Positions 11,061-64,000 of a stretch of DNA of 64,000 bases are shown piece after piece. A model generated the notes under the pieces. It saw only the letters and a list, made by a program, of their open reading frames with translations, had not been told where the DNA came from and did no database searches. The first letter of the stretch is position 1, and every line of letters begins with the position of its first letter. Source of the stretch: Hydrolagus colliei (Eukaryota); the NCBI GenBank assembly GCA_035084275.1, contig CM068742.1, forward strand, positions 154,504,001 through 154,568,000. Direction: 5' to 3'. The translations under genes were made by a program, and so were the position numbers.

Positions 11061-11069
11061 GGTTACCAA

Positions 11070-11158
11070 CCCAGGTAGCAAGCCCATATGGGCCCCATAT
11101 GGGACAAATTGGCGTTGATCCATGCCCATATGGGCCCCACATGGGCTTGCTACCTGGG
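11070..11158. mobile_element. 89-bp palindromic MITE with CCC termini and AA duplication
   Basis: ~34-bp TIR CCCAGGTAGCAAGCCCAT(A/G)TGGG..CCATATGGG, with AA on both flanks. Confidence 0.65.
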
Positions 11159-12519: not shown

Positions 12520-12840
12520 ATAGTCCTGTAGCTCAGTGGTTAGAGCGCTCGTCTTACAAGCGTGAGCCCTGTGTTCGAATGCAGGCAGGTCAGGGCGAAA
12601 CCTTGGGAAAGTTTCCTTACTCCACACACACACACATGCGCCTAATAATAATCCCTCCCCAAAAAAGTAATAAAATTGGTCCACGACTGTTTGTGGGGAC
12701 GCTGCTGTGCACAATTGGCTGCCGTGTTTCACCCACGAATATACAGTCACTTCACTTTAAAATATATTCTATGAAACGCTTTGAGACGTCTAGAAGATTT
12801 GAAAAGCGCTATATCAAATGCAATGATTATTATTATTAAA
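12520..12840 (+). mobile_element. tRNA-derived Deu-domain SINE
   Basis: Full head-core-tail structure. Confidence 0.9.
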
Positions 12841-14795
12841 TACACAGTCATTATTTGACAACAAAACCAAAATTTACACTGGTATAGCATCTTTCACGTC
12901 AGGAGGACATCCCAAGGTGCTGGACAGTAAACGAGATGTGTGTACTTGAGACAGAAAATGAGATGAGCAGTGACTGAACAAACTTAATCCTTGCTCTGTC
13001 TTAACCGAAGGTATCTCCGGTCCAAACCTGCAATGATTGTTGGTGACTCAATGAATGTTTCACTTGTGCTTGGAAGTATGTGTCAGTCTAGGGCGCAGTT
13101 ACTAGCTCAGGTATGTGGTAGTTGCAAGTTTGCAGGTTCAAGACCCACTTCAGACCTTTGAGCTCACAGTGCAGGCTAATGCTCCAGCACAGGGTACCTC
13201 TAGGCTTGACTACGCCAACTCTCTGCTTGTCACCCAACTCTTCCCTCCGTAAGCTGCATATCATTCAGCTCGGTTCCTCTCCCACTCTCATCCTCACTTA
13301 CCTGACTACAGCAACAACAACAACAAAATTACATTTATAGAGCGCGTCGAGAGGTGCTGAACAGTCAGGTCGGGACCTGAGCAAGGGAGATGGGCAGGAT
13401 AGGGGTGAGGGGAGAGATAGAGGTGGGAGGGCAGCAGAAGGCACGATCGAAGAGGCGGGTCTTGAGCCCGGCTTTGAAGAAGGTGAGGGAGGGAGCGAGG
13501 CGAAGGGACCGTGGGATGGAGATCCAGAGTGTGGGGGCAGAGCCTCCTCCGAGCAGCAGGTGACTGTAGGCACGATCGAAGAGGAAGCTCTTAAGAGTCT
13601 TAAGACCAACAAAGCTCCAGACAGATCAGTTGTTCACTTCCTGGCTGTGTGCGTCAGCGCAAACACACTGCTGCGTTCACCTGCAAAATAGACAATGTCT
13701 ACTTTGGTGTCTGATGTGGGGCTCGGACCCACAACGTTTTGACCCCAGGAACCAGAGTGGAACTGACAAAGTTAATTTTTTTAAAAAAAAACTCTTGCCT
13801 TTTAGCTGCCACGTTTTACGCACAAAATGCACAGTCACTGCGCTTATATCGGTGTATCCTCTGAAGCGTTTTGAGAAGCCTCGACGACTTGATAAAGTGC
13901 TTTATCAAATACAAGGATTATTAGTATTATTATTGTTAACTGCAGCGTCAGACTGGGTTGAAAAAAATTAAAACTTTGGCCAATCTATAGAGTGGAGCGT
14001 AGAGACATAAACAGGCCTTTCTACCAATCCAGGCTGTTCTGCAGTTTATTAAATCTTTCAACCCTATTTCCCAGCCTTGGCCTCTCACAACTTTACTCAA
14101 CCGGTTGCTCTCTAGTTTTCCTGTGCAGCGCCTTGGGACGTCCTCCCGACATGAAAGGAGCTTTATAAGTTTAAGTTGTTGTTGTAGTTAAAATATCGCC
14201 TTTAATTGTGCCTCTTTGACTCTCTATCTCACTTCTAGTAACAATCAGTTCTTCATAGAATCACAGAATTATATACACAACAGATGGAAACCATTTGTCC
14301 CATCTTGTCCATGCCGGCTCTTTGAAAAGGGCTGTCCAACTCAATCCCGCTCATCCTCCCCCCCTCTCGCCCCACAGCCCTGCAAACCTGTCCCCACCAA
14401 ATAATGATCTACTTCTCTTTTAAAAGTTCTTAACAAATCCGCTCCCACCACCCTATCAGGCAATACATTCCAGATTCCGACAACTCGCTGCGTGAACAAA
14501 TGTCTTCTCACCTCCCCTCTGTTTCTTTTAACAGTTATTTTACATCAGTGTCCTCGGATTAGTAACCCACTCAACATTGGAGATAGTAATTTGGGTCCTC
14601 TAGTTTGCAAGGCGAGCACTCTAAGCGCTAATTAGAGGTGGTGTGTGGTTGGCAGAGAGCTGACCAGGAACAGAGTGTGGTGATAAGTAGAAAAATAACG
14701 CATTCATCCTTTTATGTACAAGGAAATTCAGCAGTTTAACCTGCCCCTGTGATTTCAGCCTCTTGTGGTGTTAACATCCTACTTTGTGTTTACAG

Positions 14796-18719: not shown

Positions 18720-21470
18720 AACAACAACAACAACAACAATTTACATTTATATAGCGCCTTTCACGTCGGGAGGACGTCCCAAGGCGCTAAACAAGAGGCG
18801 TGTGACCTGAGCTGGGAGGGGAGTGTTTGGGAAGGGGTGAAACATGAAGGGGAGGTAAAAGAGTTCGGGGTGGAACAAAAGGCACGATCGAAGAGGAAAG
18901 TCTTCAAATCGGCCTTGAAAGAGGAAAGGGAAGAGGTGAAACGGAGGGATTGAGGGATGGCATTCCATAAGGTGGGAGCGGAGAAACTGAAGGCCCGGCC
19001 TCCGATGGTGGGGCGGTTCGGGCGGGGGGCTTGGAGCAGGCCAAGTCCTGTTGAACGGAGGGCCCGGGTGGGCGTGTAGGGGGAGAGTAGATCGGCTAGG
19101 TAGGATGGGGCAAGGCCGTGTAAGGCCTTGTAGGTGAGGACGAGGATCTTAAATTCGATCCTCTGGAGGATGAGGAGCCAGTGGAGACGGGCAAGGGTGG
19201 GGGTTATGTGGTCGCGGAGGCGGGTGCGGGATAGTACACGGGCTGCAGAGTTTTGGATGACCTGCAGCCTGTGAATGGAGGAACTGGGGAGGCCGACTAG
19301 GAGAGAGTTTCCGTAGTCCAGCCGTGAGGTGATGTATGCGTGCACGAGTGTTTCAGCAGCGCGGGGGGTAAGATAATTGCGGAGCCTGGCAATGTTGCGC
19401 AGATGGAAATAGGCGGTGCCGGTCAAGGCGCGGATGTGGGGGAGGAAGGAAAGTTTTTGATCGAACATGATGCCGAGGTTCCTGATTGGCTTTGTGAGGT
19501 GGAGAGTGCAGCCTTGGATGTTGAGGCTGGCAGCGCCCGATGTGCGGAGGCGCTGGCTTGAGCCAATCAGGAGGGCCTCGGTCTTACTCACGTTCAATTG
19601 CAAAAAGTTGTCCCTCGTCCACGATTCGATGTCGGACAGACATGCTGTCAGAACATCGATCGTCTGGGGGTTGAGGGATGAGGCAGAAAGGTACAACTGG
19701 GTGTCGTCCGCATACATGTGGAAATTTACCCCATGTCTGCGGATGACGTCGCCCAGAGGGAGCGTGTAAATGGTGAAAAGGAGGGGACCGAGGACAGAGC
19801 CCTGAGGGACGCCATGGGAAACTGTGCGGGGGTTTGATGAAAAGCCATTGGAAGAAACAAAATGTAAACGATGGGTCAAATAAGAGTGGAACCAGTCAAG
19901 GACTGTGCCTTGAAGGTTGAGGTGGGAGGAAAGACGTTGGAGGAGGATGGTGTGATCGACTGTGTCGAACGCAGCAGACAGGTCAAGGAGGACGAGGAGG
20001 CAGAGGTAGCCCTGGTCACAGGCGGTTAGGATGTCATTTGTGACCTTGACCAGGGCAGTTTCTGTGCTGTGGATAGGGCGGAAACCTGATTGGAGGGGTT
20101 CAAAAAGTGAATGAGTTGAAAGGAAAGAGTGGAGCTGGGAGGCAACCACTCTTTCAAGGACCTTGGATAAAAACGGGAGGTTGGAGATGGGTCTATAACT
20201 TGATGGTTGCGACGCATCAAGGGAGGGTTTCTTCAGGATAGGGGTGATGGTGGCTGTTTTAAGGGAGGTAGGGACGGTTCCTGAGGAGAGGGAAAGGTTA
20301 ATGGTGTCAGAAATGAGTGGGGCTAACAAATGGAGCTGGGTGCGGAGGAGGGGGGTGTGGATGGGGTCCAATGAGCACGTGGTGGGTTTCATGGAGGTGA
20401 TTGTTTTTGTGATTGAAAGCGGGGTGGTGGGGTTGAAAGTGTGAAATGGGGGGTGAGTAGGGGTTGAGGTAGCTGATGAGGGCGCTGAGATGGAGGAGTG
20501 GTGGGGGGAGGAAACCGCACAGCGGATTTTCTCAATTTTGGATTCGAGGAAATCCAGCATCTCCTCACAACGAACGTTTGAGGAGAGGATCTGCGAGGTG
20601 AGGCGGGGGGGGGCGGAGGAGCTGGTTGGTGGTGGCGAAGAGGAGGCGGTGGTTGTCCTTCGCTTCCAGGATTATCCTGGAGTAGAAGGCTGATTTGGCG
20701 GTGGCTAGGGCGGAGCGGTAATTTTTGATGCGGTCCAGCCAGATTTGCCGGTGGACCGTGAGGCCAGATTTGAGTCAGGTGCGTTCAACTGCTCTCACTT
20801 GGCTTTTGAGGGAACGGAGGTGAGATGTGTACCACGGTGATGATCGGGAATGGGAGACGGTTTTGGAGGTGAGGGGGGCCAGGGTGTCGAGGGTAGTGGA
20901 GAGGGTGTTGTGGAGGGCGGTGGAGGCGGAGGATGGGTCTGTACAAAAAGAATGCCATTGTGGGAGGAGGTCGGAGGTTTCTAGGGCAGAGGTGAAAGTT
21001 TGAGGGGGAATCTTCTTCCAGGGCCGGTAGAAGATGGTGGTGGGTTTGGAAGTGGAGGTGGGAGGGATAGAGGTGTTGAAAGAAATGAGGAAATGGTCAG
21101 AAATGGCCTTGTCGGTGATGGTGACGCCAGAGACGTTGAGGCCTCGGGTGATCACCAGATCGAGAGGATGGCCATGGGTGTGGGTGGCAGTGTTGATATG
21201 AAGGGAGAAGTTGAAAGACGAAAGTAAAGAGGAAAATTCAGAGGAAATGGGGCAGGAGGGGGTGAAATGGAGGTTGAAATCGCCAAGAATAATAAGGCGA
21301 TCAGAGGAGGCACAAAGGGAAACTAATAGTGAAGAAAAGTCTGAAATGAAAGTGGGGGAGGGTTTGGGGGGGCGATAAACTAATAGGATTTTGAAAGAAC
21401 TGTGGGAGGAGTGAGAAAGGGTGAGATGTTCAAAAGAGGGGAAGGAGCCGGAGGAATAGGGGGATAAGCC
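18720..21470 (-). mobile_element. L2 LINE, 5'-truncated, near-intact ORF2 (APE C-terminal part plus RT)
   Basis: 599-aa ORF 18761-20560 with [13 protein letters not shown] and YADDTQLY. Upstream frame has APE motifs (YRPP, LGDFN, TH..GHPLDL), with a TGG>TGA stop at ~20775. Tail ends in (GTT)n. Inserted into a SINE. Confidence 0.95.
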
Positions 21471-21919
21471 TATATACGTCTAGAAGATGTGAAAAGCACT
21501 ATATCAAATGCAAGGATTATTGATATTATTGTTGATCAACAGAGTTGAGGAAACGATCTTCACTCAGAATGCAGTAGCTCAGTGCCAGGAATTCAGCCAG
21601 GAATCTGCTGATATTGACAGATCCCAGGAATTGTAACCAGAATCTTTTGCAGTATGAGAGGAGGTGGTCCAGCAAACAACAACAACAACAAGTTGTGTTT
21701 ATATAGGGGCCTTGAAGCGCTCGCGATGGCTCTCTGACAGGGCCCACACCCCATCCCCACACACAAGGAGGATAGGGAGGGTGGGAGGACGGCCAAAGTT
21801 ATAGAATCATACAGCACAGAAGGAAGCCATTCGCCCCATCGTGACTGCGCTGGGTCTGAACAGAGCTGTCCAACTCAATCCCACTGTCCCGCTCTCTCTC
21901 CACAGTCCTGCAATCTTGT

Positions 21920-23045
21920 CATAGAATCATAGAATTTTACGGCACAAAAGGAGGCCATTCGGCCCATCTAGTCTGTGCCGGCTCTTTGAAAAGAGCGATT
22001 CAATCCCATTGCCCTGCCCGCTCCCCATAGCCTAATAGACCAGTTCTTCCTAAATAAAAATCTAATTCCCTTTTAAAAGTTGTTATCGAATCAGCCTCCA
22101 CCACCTTTTCAGGCAATGCATTCCAGATTCGAACAACTCGCTGAGTGAAAAAATTTCTCCTCAGCTCCCCTCTACTGCGCCTTGAAACTATTTTAAATCT
22201 GTGACCACGAGTCACAGATTCACCCACGAGTGGAAATAGTTTTTCTCTATTTGCCCTGTCGAAACCCCTCATGATCTTATAAACCTCTATTAGGTCTCCC
22301 CTCAATCTTCTCTGCTCCAGAGAGAATAACCCTAGCCTATCTAGCCTCTCCTCATAGCTGAAGTCCCTCAATCCTGGCACCATCCTAGTAAATCTTCGTT
22401 GTACCCTTTCCAATGCCTTCACATCCTTTCTGTAGTGTGGTGACCAGAATTGAACACAGTATTCCAGCTGAGGCCTCACCAAAGTTTTATAGAGGTTAGT
22501 CAGCACTTCCTGACTTTTGTACTCTATACCCCTATTTATAAAGCCTAGTATCCCATATGCCTTCTTAACAGCCTTGTCTACCTGTCCTGCCACCTTCAAC
22601 GAGTCACTAACACAAATCCCCAGGTCTCTCTGTTCCTTCACACCATTTAAAATTGTACTATCTAGCCTAGATTGCCTCCCTTCATTTCTTCTCCCAAAAT
22701 GCATCACCTCACACTTCTCTGCATTAAACTTCATCTGCCATGTGTCTGCCCACTTTACCAATTTGTCTATATCCTCTTGCAGATGGCTACTATCCTCCTC
22801 ACTGTTTACTATTCTCCCTAACTTAGTGTCATCTGCAAACTTGGAAACTGTACTCCGTACACCCAAGTCCAGATCATTGATGTAGATTACAAAGAGCAAT
22901 GGTCCCAAAACCGATCCCTGTGGCACACCACTGCTCACTTCCCTCCAATCTGAAAAACAGCCGCTCACTACAACTCTCTGCTTTCTGTCTCGCAGCCAGT
23001 TGTGGATCCACGCTGCCACTGTCCCTTTTACGCCATGGGCCTTTA
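21920..23045 (-). mobile_element. CR1 LINE 3' portion
   Basis: ORF 22000-23190 with [51 protein letters not shown]. 3' end (TTCTATGA)n. Confidence 0.93.
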
Positions 23046-24949
23046 ATTTTGTCCTCCTCAAATACCCATCTACTTCCCTCTTAAAATTCGTAATTGAATC
23101 AGCTTCCACTACCCTTTTAGGCAATGTATTCCAGATTACCAACAACTCACTGGGTGACATTTTCCCCTCTACCTCTGTTTCTTGTAACAACTATGTGAAA
23201 TCAGTGTCCTTGGGTTACTGACCCACTTGCCAGTGGAAAGAGTTTTTCCCAGTTCAACCTACCAATCCCCCTCATGATCTTGAAAATCTCCATTAAATCC
23301 CCTCTTAACCTTCTCTGCTCTTGGGAGAATAATCCTAGTTTCGCTAACCTCTCCTCATAACTAAGGTCCTTTATTCCTGGAACCCTCCTTTGTACCCTGT
23401 CCAATGTCTTAACATCTTTCCTAAAGTGTGGTGCCCAGAACTGAACACAGGCTCCAACTGAGGCCTTTTTTAAACAGTTTTATCTACTTTTCCTGCCACC
23501 TTCAGAGATTTGCTTATATGGAACCCCAGGTCTCTCGAATTCAAGATCCTCTAGGCCCTTCAAGGCCCTTCATGGCCTTTCCCCTCCACATCGCCGACCT
23601 CCGACTATGAACCTCCCGTCCCCTCTGTTCAGTGGGCTCCAGACTGCTCCATGTCCCCTGTCCGACCTGCCTTTCAGCCTCTCTACCCTCAAACTGTGGA
23701 AATCCATCCCGCAGAACCTTCGCCTAGCACCCTCCCTTGCCTCCTTGAAGGCTGGTCTTCTCTTCAACTGTGCCTTCTGCTGTCCTCCCAACTCTCTCCC
23801 TCCCCTCCTAACTCTCTCCTACTCATTCCCCCCTACCCTGCCCCTCTCCCTTGCTCGGGTCCCGACCTGATTGATCAGCATCCTCTTGACATGAAAGACG
23901 CTCTATAAATGTAATTTTGTTGTTATTGTAATTACCGACTCACTGACCAGTAGAAATAATTCCTGCCAGTTTCCATCTTCCCTGCTGCCTCCCCATTAAC
24001 CCTTCCTATTCCCTACCTCCCTCACATGGAGGTGTCTGTGAGGGGATGGGATAGAAGAAGAATATAACTACTAGCGGGGATCAGTGGGGTCTATTTCTGT
24101 GTGGGAACAGTATGAATTTGTATGAGGCTAAATCTGCTTGTCAGGCCTCCTCTCGGCCCCCTCTGTGTTTCCGCAGACTCTGCTCCTAGGTTACGCAGCT
24201 CAGGCTGTGTTATTGTGTGGAGGATTGGAGGGGTGGGGAGGTAGGGAGTTGGTGTGCCTGAACTCTGAATTTGGCGAGGAATGTCACGGGTTTCAGTGAC
24301 GGAGTTTGCTAATCCGCCTGAAGCTAATCTGCCAACGTCGAAGGGCTTTCTCATGCGTATTTATTTATACAGCAGATTTTCGAGCTTCAACATCCTTGTT
24401 CTCATCTATAAAGCCCTCCAGGCCTTGGCCCTCCTCACCTCCTCACAATGACTTGCTAACCTCATACCTATCTGTAGCTCATACCACCTCCTCTCAGTGG
24501 GCTCCTGCCTGCTCCACATCACCCTGCTTTGCCCACCCCACCATTGGTGGTTTGACCTTCAGCCTCTCTGCCCCCACCCTTTAGGACTCCCTCCCTGAGG
24601 CCCCCTCCCTTGCCTCCTTCAAGGCCCATCTCAAGACCTTCCTTCTCGGCCATGCCTTCGGTCCCACCTTGATTATACATGGTCACCCCCATCTGAGATG
24701 AGGGGAATTTTAGGTTTTAATCTGTTTCCCTTTGGTACAGTCCTATTGTTCACTACAGCCCCTCCCCGCATTGTGTTACTGCTCGTGTTAATGTAGGCAA
24801 CTAGGGGGGCAGGGAAGCGGAGAGTATTACAGTGAGAGAGGGAGGGGGAGTAACAGGATATCCTGTTAGTTACAGATATGTGATGGGGGAAGGTGTGTGG
24901 AGGATGGGGGAGAGAGAGAACAGCCTAGCTGTTACAGGAGTCCTGAAGC

Positions 24950-29180: not shown

Positions 29181-29380
29181 NNNNNNNNNNNNNNNNNNNN
29201 NNNNNNNNNNNNNNNNNNNNNNNNNNNNNNNNNNNNNNNNNNNNNNNNNNNNNNNNNNNNNNNNNNNNNNNNNNNNNNNNNNNNNNNNNNNNNNNNNNNN
29301 NNNNNNNNNNNNNNNNNNNNNNNNNNNNNNNNNNNNNNNNNNNNNNNNNNNNNNNNNNNNNNNNNNNNNNNNNNNNNNNN
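29181..29380. other. Assembly gap (200 N), probable location of PSTPIP2 exon 5
   Basis: Exon 4 ends in phase 1 and exon 6 starts in phase 0, so an intervening exon is required. None was found in the sequenced part of 27336-31386. Confidence 0.75.
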
Positions 29381-35205: not shown

Positions 35206-35550
35206 CATTTTAACTCTCCTCCCCACTCGCAGTCTGACCTCTCCGTCCACGGTCTCCTACGCTATTCCAATGAACCGCAGCGCAGGCTCGAGGACCAGCC
35301 CCTTCTCCATCAGCCCTCTGGCCTTAATGTTGATTTCAACAATTTCAGGCCATAGCAGCTCATCTCTCTCCTCTTCTGTGACCATCTGATCTGCCTGTTC
35401 TTTGGCTATGTCAGCCCCTCTGTTTGTTTTAATGTTATTAACACTTCTTTTCTGCCGTTTTGTTGCAACCCCCGCTTTTGTTTCACAACATTAACACCTC
35501 TTTAACCCATCATCTCCTGCCCTCCACCCCATTTTCCCCTTTGTCTCCCT
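35206..35550 (+). mobile_element. Penelope-like element: GIY-YIG C-terminal coding remnant plus 3' UTR
   Basis: Reads HFNSPPHSQSDLSVHGLLRYSNEPQRRLEDQ../..QPSGLNVDFNNFRP* (TAG 35353-35355), resembling the recalled Penelope C-terminus. Continues after the L2 insertion at ~37897-38090. Confidence 0.75.
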
Positions 35551-35561
35551 TGCCCTGTCTT

Positions 35562-37896
35562 GCCCTCCACCTCCAAACCCACCACCATCTTTTACCGGCC
35601 CTGGAAGAAGATTCCCCCTCAAACTTTCACCTCTGCCCTCGAAACCTCCGACCTCCTCCCACAGTGGCATTCTTTTTGCACCGACCCATCCTCCGCCTCC
35701 ACCACCCTCCACAACACCCTCTCCACTACCCTCGACACCCTGGCCCCCCTCACCTCCAAAACCGTCTCCCATTCCCGATCATCACCGTGGTACACAACTC
35801 ACCTCCGTTCCCTCAAAAGCCAAGTGAGAGCAGTTGAACGCACCTGGCTCAAATCTGGCCTCACGGTCCAACGCACCGGCAAATCTGGCTGGACCACATC
35901 AAATTTTCCCGCTCCGCCCTAGCCACCGCCAAATCAGCCTTCTACTCCAGGATAATCCTGGAAGCGAAGGACAACCACCGCCTCCTCTTCGCCACCACCA
36001 ACCAGCTCCTCCGCTCCCCCCGCCTCACCTCGCAGATCCTCTCCTCTAACGATCGCTGTGAGGAGATGTTGGACTTCCTCGAGTCCAAAATAGAGAGAAT
36101 CCGCTCCGCGGTTTCCTCCCCCCATCTCTCCTCCACCTCCGCCCCTCCATCCGTTACCTCAACCCCCACCCACCCCCCATTTCATACTTTCAACCCCACC
36201 ACCCCATCTTTAATCACAAAAATAATCACCTCCATGAAACCCACCACGTGCTCATTGGACCCCATCCCCACCCCCCTTCTCCACACCCAGCTCCACCTTT
36301 TGGCCCCGTTCATTTCTGACACCATTAACCTTTCCCTCTCCTCAGGCACCATCTCTACCTCCCTTAAAACCGCCACCATCACCCCTATCCTGAAGAAACC
36401 CTCCCTTGATGCGTCGCAACCATCAAGTTAACGACCCATCTCCAACCTCCTGTTTTTATCCAAGGTCCTTCAAAGACTGGTTGCCTCCCAGCTCCGCTCT
36501 TTCCTTTCAACTCACTCACTCCTTGAACCCCTCCAATCAGGTTTCTGCCCAATTCACAGCACAGAAACTGCCCTGGTCAAGGTCACAAATGACATCCTAA
36601 CCGCCTGTGACCAGGGCTCCCTCTGCCTCCTCGTCCTCCTTGACCTGTCTGCTGCGTTCGACACAGTCAATCACACCATCCTCCTTCAACGTCTTTCCTC
36701 CCACCTCAACCTTCAAGGCACAGTCCTTGACTGGTTCCATTCTTATTTGACCCACCGTTTACATTTTGTATCTTCCAATGGTTTTTCCTCAAACCCCCGC
36801 ACAGTTTCTCACGGCGTTCCTCAGGGCTCTGTCCTCGGTCCCCTCCTTTTCACCCTTTACACGCTCCCTCTGGGCGATGTCATCCCCAAACATGGGGTAA
36901 ATTTCCACATGTATGTGGACGACACACAGTTGTACCTTTCTGCCTCATCCCTCAACCCCCAGACGATCAATGTTCTGACAGCATGTCTGTCCGACATCGA
37001 ATCGTGGACGAGGGACAACTTTTTGCAATTGAACGTGAGTAAGACCGAGGCCCTCCTGATTGGCTCAAGCCAGCGCCTCCGCACATCGGGCGCTGCCAGC
37101 CTCAACATCCAAGGCTGCACTCTCCACCTCACAAAGCCAATCAGGAACCTCGGCATCACGTTTGACTAAAAACTCTCCTTCCTCCCCCACATCCGCGCCT
37201 TGACCGGCACCGCTTATTTCCACCTGCGCAACATTGCCAGGCTCCGAAACTATCTTACCCCCCGCGCTGCCGAAACACTCTTGCACGCATACATCACCTC
37301 ACGGCTGGACTACGGAAACTTTCTCCTCATCGGCCTCCCCCAGTACCTCCATTCACAGGCTGCAGGCCATCCAAAACTCTGCAGCCCGTGTACTATCCCG
37401 CACCCGCCTCCGCGACCACATAACCCCCACCCTCGCCCGTCTCCACTGGCTCCCCATCCTCCAGAGGATCGAATTCAAGATCCTCGTCCTCACCTTCAAG
37501 GCCTTACACGGCCTTGCCCCACCCTATTTAGATCTACTCTCCCCCTACACGCCCACCCAGACCCTTCATTCAACAGGACTTGGCCTGCTCCAAGCCCCCC
37601 GCCCGAACCGCCCCACCATCGGAGGCCGGGCCTTCAGTTTCTCCGCTCCCACCCTATGGAATGCCATCCCCCAATCCCTCCGTCTCGTTTCTTCCCTTTC
37701 CTCTTTCAAGGGCGGCTTGAAGACTTTCCTCTTCGATCGTGCCTTTTGTTCCACTCCGAACTCTTTTACCTCCCCTTCGTGTTTCACCCCTTCCCAAACA
37801 CTCCCCTCCCAGCTCGGGTCACACGCCTCCTGTGCAGCGCCTTGGGACGTCCTCCCGACGTGAAAGGCGCTCTATAAGTGTAATTTGTTGTTGTTG
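35562..37896 (+). mobile_element. L2 LINE, 5'-truncated, with stops and frameshifts
   Basis: Colinear with the reverse complement of 18720-21060. Stop at ~36430, further lesions at ~37169 and ~37340, YVDD instead of YADD. Confidence 0.95.
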
Positions 37897-41620: not shown

Positions 41621-41630
41621 GTGAGTCAAC

Positions 41631-41920
41631 ACACGCCAACACACGCCAGCACACGCCAACACATGCCAGCACACGCCAGCACACGCCAACACACGCCAAC
41701 ACACGCCAGCACACGCCAACACACGCCAACACACGCCAGCACACGCCAGCACACGCCAACACACGCCAACACACGCCAGCACACGCCAACACACGCCAGC
41801 ACACGCCAGCACACGCCAACACACGCCAACACACGCCAGCACACGCCAGCACACGCCAACACACGCCAACACACGCCAGCACACGCCAACACACGCCAGC
41901 ACACGCCAGCACACGCCAAC
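41631..41920 (+). repeat. 10-bp minisatellite, 29 units ACACGCCA(A/G)C
   Basis: Direct count. Begins 10 nt into the intron after exon 13. Confidence 0.98.
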
Positions 41921-42164
41921 ACACACTAGAACACTGAGCTATGGAGCTTCTGTAGTTCAGTGGTTAGAGCACTTGCCTTACAAGCGTGAGACCTGTGTTT
42001 GAATCCAGGCAGGTCAGGTCGAAACCTTGGGCAAGTTTCCTTACTCTATATACACACACGCAATTGTTTCGCCCACAAAAAAGATAGTCATTTCACTTTA
42101 CGGTATATCCTGTGAAGCGCTTTGAGACGTCTAGTAGATGTGAAAAGCGCTGTAATAAAAGCAA

Positions 42165-42306
42165 NNNNNNNNNNNNNNNNNNNNNNNNNNNNNNNNNNNN
42201 NNNNNNNNNNNNNNNNNNNNNNNNNNNNNNNNNNNNNNNNNNNNNNNNNNNNNNNNNNNNNNNNNNNNNNNNNNNNNNNNNNNNNNNNNNNNNNNNNNNN
42301 NNNNNN
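42165..42306. other. Assembly gap (142 N) in PSTPIP2 intron 13
   Basis: Run of N. Confidence 0.99.
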
Positions 42307-49559: not shown

Positions 49560-49680
49560 GAGGTGAGAGGTGGAGCTCTGGTACTGACCACAGATCGAGG
49601 GAAGGAAAGAGAAGGGTGACCAGCTGTGTCAGTGCGAAGCAGACGTGTGAGGGGAAGGAGTGTGTCCTGAATGAGGGAAG
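49560..49680 (+). promoter_or_regulatory. Paralogous proximal promoter of unit A (copies at ~55430-55560 and ~63755-63868)
   Basis: Shared blocks such as CAGCTGTGTCAGTGCG and GTGAGGGGAAG. Purine-rich ETS/PU.1-like GGGGAAG, no TATA box. Confidence 0.55.
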
Positions 49681-49732
49681 ATGATGCTGGGAGCTGTGCT
49701 CTGTACCCTGGTCCTGTCAGCCTCTGCTACAC
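49681..49732 (+). CDS. SIGLEC15-like unit A leader exon (MMLGAVLCTLVLSASAT), intact
   Basis: 52-nt hydrophobic signal-peptide exon with GTACGT donor, phase 1. Near-identical to 55561-55612. Confidence 0.8.
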
Positions 49733-50619
49733 GTACGTGCTTTCCAATCAGAAACCTGTCTTGCTATAATTACTGCTTTACCTTTCATTGGAATTATAGA
49801 GTTATTTCATATCTCGCAGAAATATGATAATCGTTTGTGTCTGTGCTGGGGCTTGCTCCTCTTGGGAGCTCTCTACTCTAAAACTGTTTCTTGCTCTCTC
49901 CGCATTGTGTCTGTAGACAGTCAGTAACAGCTGGATCTCTTTGTTTCGCTCATCTTAACCCAATATGCCAAAACCCTAACACCTGAGGTCCTAGCTGACA
50001 ACAAACTGGAAAATCTTGCCTGAAAATGTTCTCTGTGGATCGTTACGCGGTTATAATCAGTTAAACATTTACCCCCAAGTCATATTCTGCATTCACCAAT
50101 CCTTTGCTCTTGCCAACCCCCCAACCTGATATAATGTGTGATTTGGTGAACAGGATGTCCCTCTGAGGAGAGAGTGCACATTCCATTCCAGACATACAGA
50201 AATTTCCATCTTCGCATGGAATTCTCAGTTTGGTGAAATGTTTTGTTTCTTCTATGAATCACGCAGCTGACCACAAACGGGGCTGGCGTTTTACTCTACA
50301 CAAACCTCTTAGTCTATCACCTCTGTCCCACTCACTCCCACTCCCCAGATACCCCTTAATGTTCGTTCTCTTCAAACATCTATCGAATTGCTTTTTATAG
50401 AATTGATAAGACTTTGCCTTAACTCTGGTTTGTGGCAAGCAATTGCGCAATCCCTCTGTGTAAAGACGGTTTTGTGAGTTTTAAATTTGTTCCTCTTGTA
50501 ACTTACTTGCCAATTAGTGAAAAAATCGACTTCAAGTCCCATCTATAGACCTCCCTCTTTAATTGTGGCAACATCCCCCCCCCGCCCACTCTCTGTTAGT
50601 CCTTGGTAATAATATTAAC

Positions 50620-51000: not shown

Positions 51001-51075
51001 GGATCAGTGAGAATGGCTGGACAATGGAGACCCTGATACAGTGACTGGCAGGTTAGGGTCACCAGTCACCATGTA
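51001..51075 (+). pseudogene. SIGLEC15-like unit A V-exon remnant (frameshifted, truncated)
   Basis: The acceptor region and first ~75 nt are near-identical to 60066 onward. It has a 1-nt deletion (GAGACCCTG vs GAGATCCCTG) giving an early TGA, then switches abruptly to an antisense L2 tail. Confidence 0.85.
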
Positions 51076-55560: not shown

Positions 55561-55612
55561 ATGATGCTGGGAGCTGTACTCTGTGCCCTGGTCCTGTCAG
55601 CCTCTGCCACAC
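55561..55612 (+). CDS. SIGLEC15-like unit B leader exon (MMLGAVLCALVLSASAT)
   Basis: 52 nt, GTACGT donor. Phase 1 is compatible with the V exon at 60066. Confidence 0.85.
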
Positions 55613-56869
55613 GTACGTACTTTACCATTCAGAAACCTGACTGGCTGTAATTACTGCTGTACCTTTTACCGGAATTACAAACGTGTTTGACATTTTCAGC
55701 AATAATATAATAATAATAAATAATAATCCTTGCGATATAGTGCATTTCACATCTTCTAGGCACCTCAAAACGCTTCACTGAATATACTGTAAAGTGAATT
55801 GACTGTAAAGTCAGGGGTGATCTAACTGTTCAGTGCTTTGTCACGTCCTCCCGACGTGAAAGGTGCTATAAAAGTGCAATTTTGGTGTTGTTGTTGTTGT
55901 ATATTTGTGAGCAAAACATTGCAGCCAATTGCACACAGCAGTGTCCCACGAACAGTTGTGGATTGATATGACCAATTTATTACCGTTGCTTTTTGGACGG
56001 ATTATTATTAGGTGTGTAGAGTAAGGAAACTTACCCAAGGTTTCACCCTGACCCTGCCTGGATTCGAAACACAGGTCTCATGCTTGTAAGGCGAGTCCTC
56101 TAACCACTGAGCTACAGGACTCCGCGGTAATCCTTTGTGTCTGTGATGGGGCTTGTTCCCCACAGGAGCTTTCTTGAAATAAGAGGAACAAATTTCAACG
56201 TCGCTTGGCTACCTCATACTGCACAATACTGTTAACACTTCTCTTTCGTTACTCCCTCTCATTCTGTGGTCACCACCAGAGCTCCTCCCCCCACAACCAC
56301 TTTGCTCTGATCCTTTAATGTTTCTCCCCAACATGAATCCCAATCCTTTCTCTCTCCCCATCTTGTCTGTGCTGTTGCTCACTGTCCCACTGGAGCTCTC
56401 TACTCTAATCCCATTCCCTGCTCTGTACCCATCATATCTGTGCTGGTGCTTGTTCCCCACAGTAGCTCTCTAATTTAACTCCATTCCCCATCTTTCCCCA
56501 TCATATCTGTATACAGTCATTGACAGCTGGATCTAGTTGTTTTGCTCGATTTAATCCATATTGGGGTGAAAGGACAGCTCAGGGTCAAACTAGTCACCGG
56601 GTTCCTGAATGGCTTTTCCTGACTGGCTTGGTTTGGTTATCTCTTACATAGAATTGATATGTTTTGTGTGCTTTGAATTTGTTTCTCTTATATCTCACTT
56701 GCCAACCATTTCCCCAATGGTGAACCTTTGGGTTCTCTGTTACATCACCCATAACTTTCTCAGCTCTCACGATAAAAGCCTCAGCGTCTCCAGTCTCCGT
56801 TAATCACTGAAACCTCTCCTCTCCGGGTATATCTCAGGGAATCCTGGAAGAGAGCCACATTGCTCAATG

Positions 56870-57650
56870 TTGGCAAGACACAGGCCTTCCCCACCTCAGC
56901 CGCTGACATTGCCACCGTTCATGGCTGCACTCTTCACCTCACCGAGCCAATCCAAATCCTGTGTTCTTTTTGACCTTCAGCTATCCTTCAAATGCCACAT
57001 TCTTGCTGTGATCTGTTCTATATTTGCTCACCTCTGCAACATTTCCCACCTCCACCACTGCCTCTCATTACAAGCCGTTGAGAACCTAATTCATGGTATC
57101 ATTATGTCTCGACTTGATTATGCCAACTGCCTGCTAACTGGACTTCCCAATATGTCCACATGGTGCAGATTATTCAGAACTCTGCAGCTTGTGTCCTCTC
57201 CGGCACCAGGCTCCAGGAACCTATCATCCTATTTGCCTAGCTTCACTGGCACCTCATTCCTCAGAGATTTGAATAGAAAATCCTTGTTCTTATCTTCAAG
57301 GCCATCCCTTACCTCTCCGACCTCATAGCTCCATATCAGCCTGTTCACTTCCTTCACTCAGAGGAAACTGGCCTGCTTCAGGTCTACCGGACATTTCACC
57401 TCACCATTGGTGGTCATGCATTCAACATCTCTGCTTCCACATGCTGGATCACTGCACCACATTCCCTCTGCCTCAGCCCCTCTGTAGCCTCTTTCAACAC
57501 TTATCTGAAGATCTTGCTCTTCAATTGTGCCCTCGGTCAACGCCCTTACCCAGTATCACCCTCCACCCCTCCTGACCCTAACTCCCAGCTCGGATCTAAA
57601 ACCTGATCATCTCGTATGCTGGGATGTATTTCCAATGTGAAGAGTGCTAT
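56870..57650 (+). mobile_element. Degenerate L2 3' fragment
   Basis: SRLDYANCLL frame and tail remnant. Confidence 0.75.
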
Positions 57651-57784
57651 GAAATTTGTAGTTCTTGTTGAATCTAAGCTGAATTTTTTAACAATCTTTT
57701 TTTCTTCTTCTTACAATGGGTATCCCAAAATTGTCCACATTACTCACAGCTGTGACCTAGCCAAAGCTCTTGTACAAGCCTCAA

Positions 57785-57915
57785 AACTCAGAATACTACA
57801 GATGCTGCAAATCTGATACAAAAACAGAATATGCTGGGAACACTCAGCAGGTCAGGCAGCATCTATGGAGAAAGGAAAGTGTGTCCATGTTTTGGGTCCA
57901 CCACCCTTTGTCAGA
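57785..57915 (-). mobile_element. Diverged antisense copy of the hammerhead-bearing repeat
   Basis: Reverse complement reads CTGACAAAGGGTGGTGGACCCAAAAC..., with the same body. Confidence 0.72.
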
Positions 57916-58149
57916 AGTGGGGCATGTTGGGAGGGAGAGGCTATGGTGAACCAGCTTGCCTTTCCCTTCCCAATCTTCTGTGACCATCTGGTCTGCCTGT
58001 TCTTTTGCACTTTCATCTCCGCTTTGTTTAACGTTATTAACACGTCTTCTCTTCAGTAAACACCTCTCTTCTACAAATCCTGTAGCCCTAGTTGAAGGCT
58101 ACACCTGCCATCACCCCTCCCCACCCTAACCAATGCGGTGGCAGGATGA

Positions 58150-59880
58150 CCCTCATCTCCAAAGCTTCCCTTGGTCTTTCTCCTTATTCGTTTGGCTATT
58201 TGCTCTCTTTCGAGCACTTAACCCTCTACCATGACCCTCTCTCACTGAAAATTCTTCTATTCCACTGCATCCTGAAACCCACTGGCTTCATCCTCTCTGA
58301 CATCTCCACTATCCTCTCCTCTCTGTGCCTCTTCTCTGAATGCCTGCTCATAATGGGTGACTTCAACCTCCACCTAAACTCCTCTTGTACCACATGCCCT
58401 GACTTCACTGCCTTCTGTCCTTCCTAAACCTCACCCTCCACATCAACTTGATGACCCACAACTGTAGCTGCCCCATTAAATTCATCACTACACATGACCT
58501 TAACATCTCCAACCTGTGTATAATGGACAAGGCCATCATCGACCCTTTCCTCATCTCATTCTCCTCTCACATCCTTCTTTCCTCCACCCAGGTCTCAACC
58601 ATACTTTTCCGCCCATGGAAAAGACATCCTCCTGAGACCCTCACAAAGGTCCTATCACCACAGAACTATCCCTGTGGCATTCCACTTACATGGATCCTGA
58701 AGCAATCATTAAGCGTTTCCATGATTGCCTCTCCTCCACCTTCAATTCTCTCGTTCCCTCCTGAGATCCAGGACCATCTTCAAACCCACCTAAACCCCCT
58801 GGTACAGTGGCCATCTCTGCTCCCTGAAATCTCATGCCTGGCTACTCGAGCGCAGGTGGCAGAAAATCGGCCTCACGGTTTTTCAGCAGTTGTGGCTAAA
58901 GCATCTTCACATCCATGCTTTGTCACATGCAAAAACAGCGTACTACTCCAACATCATTCTAGAGCGCCAAAACAACTCCAAGGTTCTTTTCTCCATCATC
59001 CACTACCAGCTCTGTGCGCCCCCTCAAGCAACCTGGAGCTTCACATCCAACGCCATGTGTGAAGAGGTCATGGCCTTCCTTACTACCAAAATTAATAACA
59101 TCCACCTGGCTAGCTCTTCCTCACCCCCCCTGTCCTCAGCTCCTATCATGACCCCCATCCTACATTCCTTCTTGCCCATCACTCCTCCATCCCTCTCATC
59201 CACCATCAACACTATGAAACCCACCACCTGCTGCCTCGACCCCCTTCCCACCAACTTGCTGATCACCCAGCTCTCAATGTTCTCTGTTCCCCAGGCTCCT
59301 TCTGCCTCCTTGTCCTCCTGGACCTCTCTACCGCCTTTAACAAGGTCGATTGCGCAATTCTCCTCCGCCGCCTGTCCTCCACCATCCATGTTAGTGGGAT
59401 CCCACTCGCTTGGTTAGAGTCATATACCACAAACCGCCAGAAGTACATCTCTACAAATGACTTTTTTGCAGCTTTCACCCGGTCACCTGTGGGGTACCCC
59501 AAGAATACATCCTTGGCCTCCTTCTCTTCCTTATCTACATGTTCATTCTTGGTGATGCAATCCGCAGACATGGCGTAAACTTCCACATGTATGCAGGTGA
59601 CACCCACCTCTACTATCTTAAATTGCGACACCCCCACCCCAGCCCACCCCCCCAGTCCCCTGATGTTCTATCAGCCTGTCTGTCCCCCTCTCAAGAGCTG
59701 GATGAGCGCAATTTTACCAGAATCAATCTTCGCTCCTTGATTACCCCAGTCCCCGCCAGTCCCTGCCAGAATTCACTGGATCCCTCTCACAGAGTGGATC
59801 AACTTCAAGATCCTCACTCTTGTCTTTAAATCTCTCCACTCCTCTGCACTGCCCTATATCTCTAACCTCCTCTCTCCTGA
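58150..59880 (+). mobile_element. Older degenerate L2 (APE and RT remnants)
   Basis: Fragmented frames [33 protein letters not shown]. Confidence 0.85.
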
Positions 59881-60065
59881 CAACAGTTACCATTATTTTG
59901 TTGCAACAACCACCACCACCACCCTTTGTTTAACAAACTTAATATGTCTTCAACCCATCATCTCCCATTTGTTTTCCGTCTCCTGCCTCCCCTATCCATC
60001 AGTTCTCAGTTCTCATCTGTTTGCTTTTATATTGTGTTCACATTACACCATGTGTGTCCTCACAG

Positions 60066-60455
60066 GGCTCAGTGTGAATGACTGGACAATGGAGATCCCT
60101 GATACAGTGACTGGCAGGTTAGGGTCACCAGTCATCATGTACTGCAAGTTCACTCACCCTCACCCTGGATACACAGGTAACATCACCATCATGTGGAAGG
60201 GAGGCAGGAGAGGTCCTGTGTATTTTACATATACAAACTATAGGCCAGATTCACAGGGAAAGTATCAAAATGTAATTGATGTAAATGAGAGAGATCGATA
60301 CCGAGTGATTGGAAACCCGAGGAGGAATGACGCGACAATACAGATAAACCAGCTGAGGGGAGAGGACACAAATAAGCTGTTCATGTGTCATGTGGAGCTC
60401 CAGGGTGAGGATGGAAAGTTTGAAAGTCACCCAGATACACGTCTGTATATTACAG
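60066..60455 (+). CDS. SIGLEC15-like unit B Ig V-set exon 1
   Basis: cacAG/GTGAG, 390 nt, phase 1-1, open. WTMEIP..YCKFTHPH..Y.G..T..W...RYRVIGNPRRND...D...FMCHVE..G...ES...RL.IT aligns by eye to human SIGLEC15 WSMQVP..LPCTFTHPH..RFRLLGNPRRND..YFCRVE..ES..RLHVT. Confidence 0.9.
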
Positions 60456-61290
60456 GTGAGGAACGATGGGAAGTGGGAATGAGACGTGATGATCCTCACT
60501 GGTGCTGGAGACATATTGTGAGGGTATATATGTGTGGAACTCCAACTGGTTTAGATATTCTTAACAATGGTGACAGATTTATTCATGTATAAGGCAAATG
60601 TCTGCCCAAATACAAGAGATTTTCTCCTTGTTTCCTCAGCAACAAACCTCTATGTTTAACAGTCAATCATTTCATAACCATTGAGTTCTTTGATCTGGGT
60701 AAACTGACTGCAAAAATGTCACTATATTTATAGTAAGAAATAAAAATAATTATTGTTGTTCATATTACATCTGATTACATTTTCTTGATATACAGATCAA
60801 TAGAATACTCTATAAAGTGAATTGACTGTATGTTTTGTTGGCAAAATACGGTAGCCAATTGCACACAGCAGTTTCCCATAGATACTCGTGGATTGAGTAA
60901 CCAAAGCTTTGTTTAAGGGATTATTACCAAGCAAATAAATACGCCAATTGAAGAAAACAATGGTTTCCTATGTACCCTTAGGTAAACAGACATGTGTGGA
61001 CAAAGGAAAATTATCCAAGGTTTCTCCCTTCCCATGAATCAAGCTCAGGTCCTCTATATTATGAGGCAAGTGTTCTAAGCTACAAGACTTTTCAGTAAGA
61101 AGGTTATTGGCGCTATTAAAAGCCAAAGTTTAATTAGTGAGACATTGCTGCCCACAATCTCAGAGAGGGTGAGTGAGGAGCACAGGCCTGAGGGAGATAG
61201 TGCCATGAAAAGCAGGAATATACAGGATTTGTAACATGTACTGTGTCTCACTGACTGCTCTGCACTATTCCAATCCTGTTCCTGTCTCAG

Positions 61291-61674
61291 GTCATGAAGA
61301 GAAGCTCCCGTCAGTGACTGGTACCAAGGGAGGTGATGCCACACTGCCCTGCTCCTTCACCAGGCCCAACACATACCAGAATCGTGCCAGAGTCACAGTG
61401 ATTTGGAGGAGAGGGAGGCCACAAGGGCAGCCAATTTCTAATGATACTCTTCACGTCACCTCCCGCTCCAACCCCAGGGAGTCAGAGACAGTGAATGAAG
61501 GAAATCGCCATAACCTGGTCGGGAATGTGAGGGATGGAGACGCTTCCCTGAGGATCAGAGACCTGGAGTTAAACGACACCGACCAGTATTTCTGTCACGT
61601 ACACGTCATGTTTATGTATGACAGTCAACAACAGGACCATGTGACACAGGACACATCACGGCTGCTGGTTGTTG
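61291..61674 (+). CDS. SIGLEC15-like unit B Ig V-set exon 2
   Basis: tctcAG/GTAAGA, 384 nt, phase 1-1, open. V-set hallmarks G.DATLPCSF, VIW, GN...GDASLRI.DL...DTDQYFC. Confidence 0.9.
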
Positions 61675-61929
61675 GTAAGAAATCTCTTGTCTCTGTGGGA
61701 CATGGAAAGGGGTAAATGTCAATGTTCACGGGCGCATCATTACAGACTAGGTTTGTCTCATTCCTTACCCTGTGCCTCACGTGTTAATTAGCAAAAGAAA
61801 CATGTTATGAAACAGTGGAACCTGTAACTGGGGGAGGGTTTCTTCTCACTTGCCTCCCGTTAAAGCTGCAGCCAAATTTAGGGCAAGCAGCCGGTATCTT
61901 ACCAATGACATGTAATGTGGTTTTCACAG

Positions 61930-61952
61930 GATCACAGGATTGGTCTGAATGA
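61930..61952 (+). CDS. Candidate short terminal exon of unit B (GSQDWSE*)
   Basis: First plausible acceptor after V2 (gtggttttcacAG). Phase-1 reading reaches TGA after 7 codons. No transcript support. Confidence 0.35.
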
Positions 61953-63868
61953 AGAAACCACATCTAATCTTATCCTTACTGAACCCCCCCAATCACCCCC
62001 TAATCCCTACCAACCCCTCGCCCCCCAATACATTGGTATCAAGCGGAGTCTAAAAGTCTGTAATTGCTCTGTCTGAAGTGAAATTGGATAGATACGTAAA
62101 AAGGAAACCGAAACATTTTCAGGGCTCTGGGGTAAGAGCGGGACAGTGCGACTAGTTGGTAGATCCTGTAGCTTGGAGCACTTGCCGTGCAAGCCAGAGG
62201 ACCTGTGAAGTGCTTTGAGCCGTTGAGAAGATGTGAAAACTTCTAAATTAAATGCAATTATTATTATCATTACTAGTGATGATAGAAGTAGCAGTAAATA
62301 CAAGGATGATTATATATTACAGCTCTTTCAAAGAACCGGTTACAGAGACGATGTTGCAAATGGCCTTCTTCCTGCTATAAGATTCTATGATATTAAAATG
62401 GAACCTGTAACCCCCTCACCCCCCACCCCCCTCTCACAACCCACTCATCACCCCCACCACCACCCTTCCTACAACCCCCTCCCAGGAATCTATTGGATAC
62501 TCACCTTAGACTATGTGATTCCAAATTCCACTGTGGAGTGTGAGGAGGAACCTCAGGAGGAAATGATTGTTAATCCATTGGCGCTTTGCATTTCTGGGTA
62601 ATAAGCTCTTAAAGAAAAAAGTTGGTCACTCAATCCATGATTGTTTATTGGACAACTGCGGTGCGCAATTGGCTGCCATACCAACAAAATATACAATCAC
62701 TATTTTCCGTGATGAGCTTTGAGATGCCTCACAAACATGATAAGGTACGATAGCAAATGCAAGGATTATTATAATTTGTGTATAAATTGGCAGCTAACAG
62801 GATGGTTGTATATGGAGCTCGGTCAGAAATATCAGAGAAAACAAAGACAGAGGGAGGGGAGAGAATTCCTATGAAAGTTGACAGAACTGAATCTGGGAAA
62901 TATCGCCCCATTAGCCTAATCTCAATAATTTTACTTCTTAATTTTTCTATCATTGGAAAGTCAGTGGCTGATAATCACTTCCTTTCTTTAGATATAATAA
63001 TAATATCATTGACAGCCAGCACAGGTTCAGAAAAGGTACATATTGTTTGACCAAACGCATATACTGTACTTTGTTTGAGGAGGTGACAGCTCAAATTAAT
63101 TTGGGGAAGCTATATGTTGTAGCACAGCTAGATCCAGAAGACTTTCAACAAAGTGCCACAAGAAACCCAGCTTCACAAACGGTATTCACTGGATAGCAAG
63201 AGAAAGACTAGGAACTGGATTCAGAATTGGCTGAAGGGAAGGAAGCAGAGGCCTTTGTTAGGGGAGCAATGTCGTAATATATACTGTATGCTGTTGTGCA
63301 GTGACCACTTGCCTCACAACAACTACAACAAAATGACATTTGTATACATGCCTTTCATGTCACAAGCAAGAGACCTGGGTTCAATTCCCAGCAGGGCGAA
63401 ATGTTGGACAAATTTTCTTACTCCACAAGCCTCTGTTTACCGAACAGTAAGGAGGAACCCAGTTGTTATTCAATTGGCGAATCACTTTTCTGGGGATGAT
63501 AAATTGTTAAAAAAACTGATAATTAATTGATCAATTCAATTGTTTGGGAGACACTGAATTGCTGAATTGTCTGCCATGATTGTCCCACAAAATACAATAG
63601 AGTCACTTTATAGTTTATTCTGTGAAGAATTTTGAGGCACCAAATGCAACGATTATTGGTGATGACCTGGAGTTGTAGACCCAGTGTAAAATAGTTAAGA
63701 GAATGGGACGGTGGAAGGGTTAGTGTTGGGAAGAACAGTACAGAGGCTCAGAACAAAGCAGGCGTGGGAGGTGGAGCTCAGACAGTGACCACAGAATGAG
63801 GGGAGGATGGAAATAGAAGGGTGAACAGTTGAGTTAGTGTAAGCAGGAAAGTGAGGGGAAGTGAAGAG

Positions 63869-63920
63869 ATGATGCTGGAAGCTGTGCTCTGTCCCTGGTA
63901 CCGTCATCCTCTGCGGGTTT
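63869..63920 (+). pseudogene. SIGLEC15-like unit C leader exon, frameshifted
   Basis: ATGATGCTGGAAGCTGTGCTCTGT-CCCTGG has a 1-nt deletion relative to the other leaders, and the GTACGT donor is lost. Upstream 63720-63868 is homologous to the unit A and B promoters. Confidence 0.75.
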
Positions 63921-64000
63921 TAGTGTGACCAAATAGAGAATAAGAATTGGGAAAATAGCAATAGATTATTTCTGCTAATCAGCCAGTTAGTTACAAGAGG

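Follow-up and report, generated by a model that had tools for sequence, protein, structure and literature searches.

Siglec-15 is usually presented as a conserved lectin of one V-set and one C2 domain, in which Arg143 and a transmembrane lysine are retained from fish to mammals (PMC7226832). In the solved structure of the human protein (PDB 7ZOZ), C64 and C142 form the B-F disulfide, R143 stands on strand F directly after C142 and salt-bridges the carboxylate of sialic acid, the R143A mutation abolishes binding, and a second disulfide, C95-C104, lies in the C'-C'' region (PMC10264397). The transmembrane lysine recruits DAP12 and DAP10 (PMC7226832). Among other Siglecs, human Siglec-XII (SIGLEC12) has two N-terminal V-sets and a mutated essential Arg (R122C), and has lost sialic-acid recognition, and loss of the Arg in one partner of a Siglec pair is known in apes (PMC6288428). 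In this work we analyse a 64,000-nucleotide stretch of the Hydrolagus colliei genome (GenBank assembly GCA_035084275.1, contig CM068742.1, positions 154,504,001 to 154,568,000 of the forward strand), called the window below and numbered from its first letter, which holds at positions 55561-61674 the 5' half of a Siglec-15-like receptor gene in three exons (leader, V1 and V2). The initial annotation took this gene for a lineage-specific offshoot of the V+C2 gene, in which the same substitution, His for the sialic-acid-binding Arg, in two divergent V domains hinted at selection. What we find is probably a holocephalan member of a Siglec-15-like family common to all cartilaginous fishes, for which two V domains in a row are the normal build and not a local novelty.

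Results

Gene structure and family membership

The leader and the two V-set exons are open and phase-compatible, as first described, with AG and GT splice sites, phase 1 at every junction and a joined reading frame of 826 nt free of stops. The features of the gene are the following.

55561..55612, + strand: exon 1, from the start codon through the signal peptide, MMLGAVLCALVLSASAT, to one base of a split codon, with a phase-1 GT donor at 55613
55613..60065, + strand: intron 1, 4.45 kb, containing a copy of a short interspersed nuclear element (SINE) and a decayed fragment of a non-LTR (long terminal repeat) long interspersed nuclear element (LINE)
60066..60455, + strand: exon 2, V1, Siglec-15-type V-set domain, 129 full codons, phase 1-1
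60389..60391, + strand: V1 His codon CAT, His108 of the domain, at the Siglec-15 Arg143 position
60456..61290, + strand: intron 2, 835 bp
61291..61674, + strand: exon 3, V2, family-specific second V-set domain, 127 full codons, phase 1-1, with a GT donor at 61675
61596..61598, + strand: V2 His codon CAC, His102 of the domain, at the Arg143-equivalent position

The leader starts at the ATG at 55561 and matches that of Callorhinchus milii LOC103174418. The V1 exon is bounded by the acceptor ...cctcacAG/GG and the donor ACAG/GTgagg, the V2 exon by ...tctcAG/GT and GTTG/GTaaga, and each acceptor AG stands behind a pyrimidine tract. Both domains pass the Pfam V-set threshold (PF07686; 1.3e-6 for V1, 8.9e-15 for V2) and have two cysteines each, those of V1 being the B and F cysteines only. 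The motifs quoted in the initial annotation are all found in the exons: CKFTHPH, GNPRRND, ESHPDTRL and FMCHVE in V1, and YFCHVH in V2. Within intron 1, self-BLAST places the SINE copy at about 55700-56120, and the LINE fragment, with reverse-transcriptase-like text in open frames, lies at about 56800-59900. The final 154 bp of intron 2 have 92% identity to the matching intron of a C. milii paralog (locus L001).

A homology search of the joined protein against a collection of 5.8 billion proteins found C. milii LOC103174418 (isoform X1, P0001, 414 aa, a RefSeq 'uncharacterized protein') with 79% identity and 100% coverage over 275 residues; at E 2e-140, chance similarity is no issue. Further C. 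milii models were matched as well, and a Pristis pectinata 'Siglec-15' at 44% identity over 95% of the joined protein. The C. milii protein has the leader, V1 and V2 in the same order as the window gene (81% identity in V1, 75% in V2) and shares YFCHVHV in V2, but its V1 reads WSCRVEL, with Arg, where the window has FMCHVEL, with His, and it goes on into a C2 domain, a transmembrane helix bearing a Lys in mid-membrane, and a tail of 17 aa, none of which is in the window. The nearest proteins to the window domains are all from C. milii, with 62-81% identity per domain, and at the DNA level the gene is 81-92% identical to L001.

The same architecture extends far beyond the chimaeras. A search with the Pristis protein returned 33 proteins, from skates, rays, sawfish and sharks, and V1-V2-C2-transmembrane proteins occur in at least 16 chondrichthyan genera, many of them already named "Siglec-15" in RefSeq. 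Their common plan is a signal peptide, a Siglec-15-type V1, one to three V2-type domains, a C2 domain with an EGEPP..W motif and a transmembrane helix, the C2 motif and the transmembrane Lys being shared between the window gene's relatives and human Siglec-15. Elasmobranch examples such as Pristis pectinata P0005, Leucoraja P0015 and Heterodontus P0023 have V1-V2-C2-transmembrane with YFCHV[WH] in V2, and are at most 44% identical to the window protein. In the Pristis locus (L002) the leader, V1 and V2 have an exon each, and a single exon follows for C2, transmembrane helix and tail; the first intron there is about 55 kb long and the V2-to-C2 intron 3.2 kb, and the order of leader, V1 and V2 exons with phase-1 junctions is the same in the window. 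A search with a full-length family profile was dominated by giant multi-immunoglobulin proteins, through its C2 part, and left about 24 small proteins usable.

In a maximum-likelihood tree of 102 V domains (LG+G4, ultrafast bootstrap, UFboot), window V1 falls in a chondrichthyan V1 clade (UFboot 99), where, together with the V1 of C. milii P0001 and P0003, it is split from all other domains with UFboot 100. Window V2, which carries the family motifs YFCH-V and, on strand G, VTQD, is placed in the C. milii V2 clade (UFboot 100), itself part of a chondrichthyan V2 clade supported at 94, or at 100 with two Heptranchias outliers. The compatible exon phases and the RefSeq models of many species that join V1, V2, C2 and transmembrane helix bear out that V1 and V2 belong to one type of gene. 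The V1-V2-C2 form is family-wide in Chondrichthyes, under automatic RefSeq names, which speaks against the offshoot initially proposed. Chondrichthyan V1, V2 and the single-V 'Siglec-15' of sharks group beside the bony-vertebrate Siglec-15 clade, with a support of only 47-70; this holds for all the deep branches (V1, V2, shark single-V, bony-vertebrate Siglec-15, CD33), and a truncated CD33 outgroup falls inside the ingroup, so we make no claim on a strict SIGLEC15 ortholog or on the date of origin of V2. No conserved neighbour genes were found in the 64,000 nt of the window.

The bony-vertebrate Siglec-15 proteins retrieved have a single V domain, except for lineage-specific duplications. The lungfish Protopterus annectens (P0063, P0044) has multiplied its V domains independently, with Arg kept in every copy, into a V-V-C2-transmembrane form with Lys and a protein of 1128 aa in which V domains follow one another in tandem, the domain scan recovering seven of them. 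Sharks also have single-V 'Siglec-15' proteins (P0104 Carcharodon, P0183 Cetorhinus; P0112, P0159) that keep the Arg, lack a mid-membrane Lys and have a cytoplasmic tail, which in Carcharodon contains LDYSEV.

Siglec-15 match and the Arg143 position

The best solved relative of both domains is human Siglec-15 (7ZOZ), with E 2.9e-18 for V1, where fmcHve is aligned on yfcRve, and E 4.4e-11 for V2, where yfcHvh is aligned on yfcRve. For a profile built from 17 V2 domains, the V domain of 7ZOZ is again the top hit per single domain, at 58.6 bits as against about 45 for the next. CD276 beats Siglec-15 with this profile only as the sum of two 30-bit domains, and the NCBI names 'CXADR-like', 'CD276 homolog' and 'Siglec-12' given to some family members are naming artefacts.

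The equivalence of the two His residues to Arg143 follows from their position next to the invariant immunoglobulin cysteine. In the alignment of the 102 domains the Cys column is common to all but two sequences (a CD33 outgroup fragment that ends earlier and one Amblyraja domain with Arg), which makes the next column unambiguous. AlphaFold2 models agree, placing His108 of V1 within strand 103-111 (predicted local distance difference test, pLDDT, 93.5) and His102 of V2 within strand 97-109 (pLDDT 82), that is, on the F strand in each case. The V1 model finds 7ZOZ at rank 1 in Foldseek, with template modelling (TM) scores of 0.87/0.90 and a root-mean-square deviation of 1.4 Å, the next hits having TM scores of 0.72 or less. 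The V2 model gives a non-specific result, in which many V-sets score about equally and 7ZOZ comes third, yet with the highest TM score (0.68) and identity (31%), so the link between V2 and Siglec-15 rests on sequence and profile scores. Two points of the initial annotation, the Siglec-15 type of V1 and the presence of His at the site of the essential Arg in both domains, are thus upheld by the alignments and by structure prediction.

Compared with human Siglec-15 (UniProt Q6ZMC9), window V1 shares the fold, CxFTHPH, GNPRRND and the B-F disulfide. The pocket residues, as read from the sequence alignment to 7ZOZ, are largely retained (W44=W, R153=K, Y154=F, E155=E), R153 being a backbone contact, so that Trp44, an aromatic residue at Y154 and E155 are common to both. 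The window protein differs in having two V domains where the human protein has one V and one C2, in the His at both Arg sites, and in the C-C' loop of V1, which is 2 residues shorter and has lost the equivalent of Tyr87 (a gap in the alignment). Having only the B and F cysteines, V1 is also without an equivalent of the second disulfide, C95-C104. In V2 nothing corresponds to Trp44, and the G strand fails to align with Siglec-15. On these comparisons and models V1 is the true Siglec-15-type lectin domain, and V2 an old, divergent duplicate of such a domain, without a recognisable sialic-acid pocket. The strand-F Arg essential to Siglec-15 is His in both, and V1, with its fold and most pocket residues kept, resembles the Arg-mutated ('Roman-numeral') Siglecs.

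The Siglec-XII of humans is like the window protein in combining tandem V-sets with a naturally mutated essential Arg, but it is a CD33-related protein with ITIM (immunoreceptor tyrosine-based inhibitory motif) signalling, its mutation is human-specific and gives Cys, not His, and it shares no descent with the chondrichthyan V2. A 'Siglec-15' paralog of Latimeria chalumnae (XP_014347958.1, P0184) shares with window V1 the His at the Arg143 site (YFCHVEL), but has a single V and a C2 domain, and is an independently arisen sarcopterygian paralog.

Different histories of the two histidines

Among the 38 domains of the V2 clade, from the chimaera, sharks, skates and rays, the F-strand Cys is followed by H in 33, Y in 3, C in 1 and R in 1, from which it follows that His was already present at this site in the common ancestor of chimaeras and elasmobranchs; the V2 His is the ancestral and conserved state of the family. 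The V1 clade is far more varied, with R in 11 domains, L in 9, Q in 3, W in 1 and H in 1, and the sole His is that of the window. The closest V1 sequences (P0001, P0002, P0003) have Arg, and the codon is CGT in the C. milii L001 paralog as against CAT in the window. The V1 His is, on this comparison, a single CGT-to-CAT CpG transition, recent and private to the window copy. The CpG transition is the commonest type of mutation in methylated vertebrate DNA, and His (CAY) from Arg (CGN) is the expected product of CpG decay, so a recurrent change from Arg to His needs no selection. An ancestral His in V2 and a private CpG transition in V1 are not parallel events, and the hint at selection seen in their coincidence does not hold.

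His after the F-strand Cys was also observed in the coelacanth Latimeria (P0184), in the sixgill-type shark Heptranchias (P0170, YKCHVDL) and in the electric ray Narcine (P0180, YRCHVEL), and the change from Arg to His at the Arg site of Siglec-15-family domains is thus a recurrent one.

The elasmobranch proteins can be compared by tail type (P0005, P0015-P0018 and P0022-P0027 against P0013, P0019, P0020, P0042 and P0067). Of the short-tail forms with a transmembrane Lys, 9 of 10 carry Leu at the V1 site, whereas the long-tail forms, several of them with ITIM-like motifs or motifs resembling the immunoreceptor tyrosine-based switch motif (LIYSIV, ILYSSV, VIYATV, TLYSTV), have Arg or Gln; those with ITIM-like motifs keep the Arg, unlike the window copy. 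This pattern may reflect only one or two substitution events on the tree. The two forms look like a paired activating/inhibitory family, comparable to Siglec-5/14 and Siglec-11/16, in which short forms with a transmembrane Lys and long forms with ITIMs likewise have similar ectodomains. Those pairs, however, are mammalian CD33-related genes, and the type of the window copy is unreadable, no transmembrane exon being present in the window.

Surrounding sequence

The window consists mostly of repeats, with a SINE of about 320 bp in more than 40 copies, and the gene is set among pseudogene fragments and transposons. Three sequences related to the gene lie on either side of it.

49681..49732, + strand: leader exon of an upstream broken copy, MMLGAVLCTLVLSASAT, GT donor kept
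51001..51075, + strand: pseudo-V1 fragment of the upstream copy, matching the start of V1 at 91.5% identity, with a 1-bp deletion; similarity stops at 51075
63869..63928, + strand: third, decayed leader-like sequence, 2.2 kb after V2, with a 1-bp deletion, the donor lost and a stop (MMLEAVLCPWYRHPLRVLV*)

In the upstream copy, the leader is intact, and it and an 80-bp region before it (49600-49796) are 92% identical to the exon 1 region of the gene, and the intron between leader and V1 fragment, which contains a SINE, is 1.27 kb long as against the 4.45 kb of intron 1. The third promoter-leader copy (63764-63928) is 78% identical to the upstream region of the first, which suggests a tandem array of units, perhaps continuing past the end of the window.

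Other elements of the window are non-LTR retrotransposon copies at 18764-21479 (-), 9823-11016 (+) and 35442-37874 (+), one of which has two long open frames, of 234 and 636 aa, for endonuclease and reverse transcriptase, and a second, different element bearing a reverse transcriptase at 22003-23190 (-). There is also a 10-bp microsatellite, CAACACACGC, at 41627-41924, with about 30 copies and long spurious open frames on both strands, as well as two runs of N, at 29181-29380 (200 bases) and 42165-42306 (142 bases).

Discussion

If the window gene is built like its relatives, its product would be a type I membrane receptor of myeloid-type cells. It would probably end, as in C. milii LOC103174418, in a C2 domain followed by a transmembrane helix that has a Lys in mid-membrane, a residue also present in the elasmobranch short-tail forms; by analogy with Siglec-15, this Lys would pair with an adaptor of the DAP12 type, carrying an immunoreceptor tyrosine-based activation motif, and make the receptor an activating one. 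With His108 in place of the Arg, V1 would lack the salt bridge to the carboxylate and should bind sialic acid in the canonical way much more weakly or not at all, as do the Arg-mutated primate Siglecs. The abolition of binding by R143A in human Siglec-15 makes this reasonable to suppose, and to that extent the suggestion of a lost glycan specificity may stand for V1. V2 could serve as a non-lectin spacer or a protein-binding module, which is the more likely role given its conserved His, its conserved strand-G VTQD and the lack of a recognisable sugar pocket. In its AlphaFold2 model the F and G strands form a long beta hairpin. This hairpin (window 61590-61650) differs in length and sequence among the chimaera paralogs P0001, P0004 and P0008; that of P0004 has a 16-residue insert of TTQEH-type repeats, and the elasmobranch V2 is 4 residues shorter.

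Several of our results weigh against such a complete and working receptor gene. A search with 78 family proteins found no C2, transmembrane or further immunoglobulin exon across the window beyond V1, V2 and the pseudo-V1 fragment, and in particular no C2-transmembrane exon in the 2.3 kb that remain after V2 (61675-64000). The decayed leader at 63869 and the broken upstream copy make this a neighbourhood of gene birth and death, the exons are no more similar to the L001 paralog (86%) than the introns are (81-92%), and no protein identical to the predicted one was found in the collection of 5.8 billion, although it may have escaped annotation, have been marked as a pseudogene, or belong to a species whose proteome is not deposited. 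As for function, the pairing with DAP12 is taken from a relative's exon unseen in the window, the loss of glycan binding is carried over from the human R143A mutant, and glycan binding outside the canonical pocket can occur, as in Siglec-6 (PMC10122656). The missing exon, the decayed neighbours, the like identity of exons and introns and the absence from the protein collection could also describe a dead or 5'-truncated copy, left with leader, V1 and V2 after the rearrangements that made the neighbouring fragments also removed its C2-transmembrane exon, and whose change from Arg to His in V1 was a CpG mutation tolerated under relaxed selection. In the C. milii L001 paralog (MU249832.1, 138.59-138.62 Mb; 10046-14255; less than 0.6 Mb from the scaffold end) the C2-transmembrane exon follows about 750 bp after what is left of V2. 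That same locus, the source of the 165-aa RefSeq 'Siglec-15' (P0003), has had its V2 deleted except for the first codons, so that decay is common in the cluster. The region after window V2 has no similarity to the V2-C2 intron of L001, which leaves a deletion breakpoint unplaced. On the other hand, the three exons are undamaged, with an open frame of 826 nt and each of the six splice signals in place, and the dN/dS (ratio of nonsynonymous to synonymous substitution rates) of V1 against L001 is 0.50, not 1, at a dS of 0.25 (V1 only). In a simulation of neutral substitution at dS/2, only 3% of copies keep the 826-nt frame of the three exons open, from which it follows that the frames were constrained for most of the copy's history and that, if the copy has died, it did so recently; that the frames are intact thus speaks for constraint over a long time. 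The V2-to-C2 intron of Pristis, moreover, is longer than what remains of the window. We therefore lean, without great assurance, towards a gene that is complete beyond position 64000, and hold the dead or truncated copy to be the less probable of the two, if a serious contender. A gene ending shortly after V2, to yield a secreted two-domain decoy, would also account for the missing C2-transmembrane exon, and short V-only RefSeq models such as P0003 do exist in C. milii. But V2 ends in a good phase-1 GT donor with no stop, and reading through it adds 13 intron codons (VGKKSLVSVGHGKG*); the short C. milii models come from the V2-deleted locus or from intron read-through, and no complete family member found stops after the V domains, the V-only models being truncated ones, judging from their tails. 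Such a soluble protein seems very improbable to us.

The idea with which this locus was first put forward, a lineage-specific offshoot of Siglec-15 whose two V domains each exchanged Arg for His, in separate events selected for a new glycan specificity, draws on the fact that His does occupy the Arg143 site in both, and could also appeal to its recurrence in the unrelated paralogs P0184, P0170 and P0180 as a hint at a favoured replacement. The survey of the family largely refutes it. The His of V2 predates the split of chimaeras and elasmobranchs, being found in 33 of 38 domains and at least 16 genera, that of V1 goes back to a single CpG transition not shared by the nearest paralogs, the recurrence is explained by CpG decay without selection, and the V-V build is the family norm; we consider it improbable. 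A broader adaptive interpretation is that the cartilaginous fishes possess a receptor system of their own, so far undescribed, which grew from Siglec-15 over 400 million years ago and in which activating partners with a transmembrane Lys and inhibitory partners with an ITIM tail share V1, V2 and C2. V2, with its near-invariant His and its F-G hairpin of variable length, would be a new module for non-glycan ligands, and the losses of the V1 Arg (to Leu in the elasmobranch Lys forms, to His in the window and several other copies) would be an adaptive release from the recognition of sialic acid as 'self', and not decay. Taken as a whole this is a tentative and rather unlikely proposal. That the family could be an undescribed one was also part of the initial annotation. 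No description of Siglec-15-like genes of cartilaginous fishes was found in the literature searched, which leaves out most subscription journals, so that this absence is not proof, and the fish Siglec paper found covers teleosts only; many members, however, already bear the name 'Siglec-15' in RefSeq. The chondrichthyan Siglec-15-like family thus seems to be undescribed as far as the searched literature goes, though not unrecorded.

In conclusion, the window locus is a real but ordinary, and possibly incomplete, member of a Siglec-15-like family already predicted in public annotations, and by itself it has little meaning; its single unusual residue is of trivial mutational origin. The picture at the level of the family is moderately interesting for comparative immunologists and glycobiologists. 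Where Siglec-15 is usually presented as conserved, its cartilaginous-fish relatives have instead an additional V domain in which the Arg site is fixed as His, vary freely at the Arg site of V1, and have expanded into short-tail forms with a transmembrane Lys and long-tail forms with ITIM-like motifs. They offer testable material on the loss or change of glycan binding in lectin receptors and on the age of paired receptors, and the chondrichthyan Siglec-15-like family as a whole may merit a proper description.

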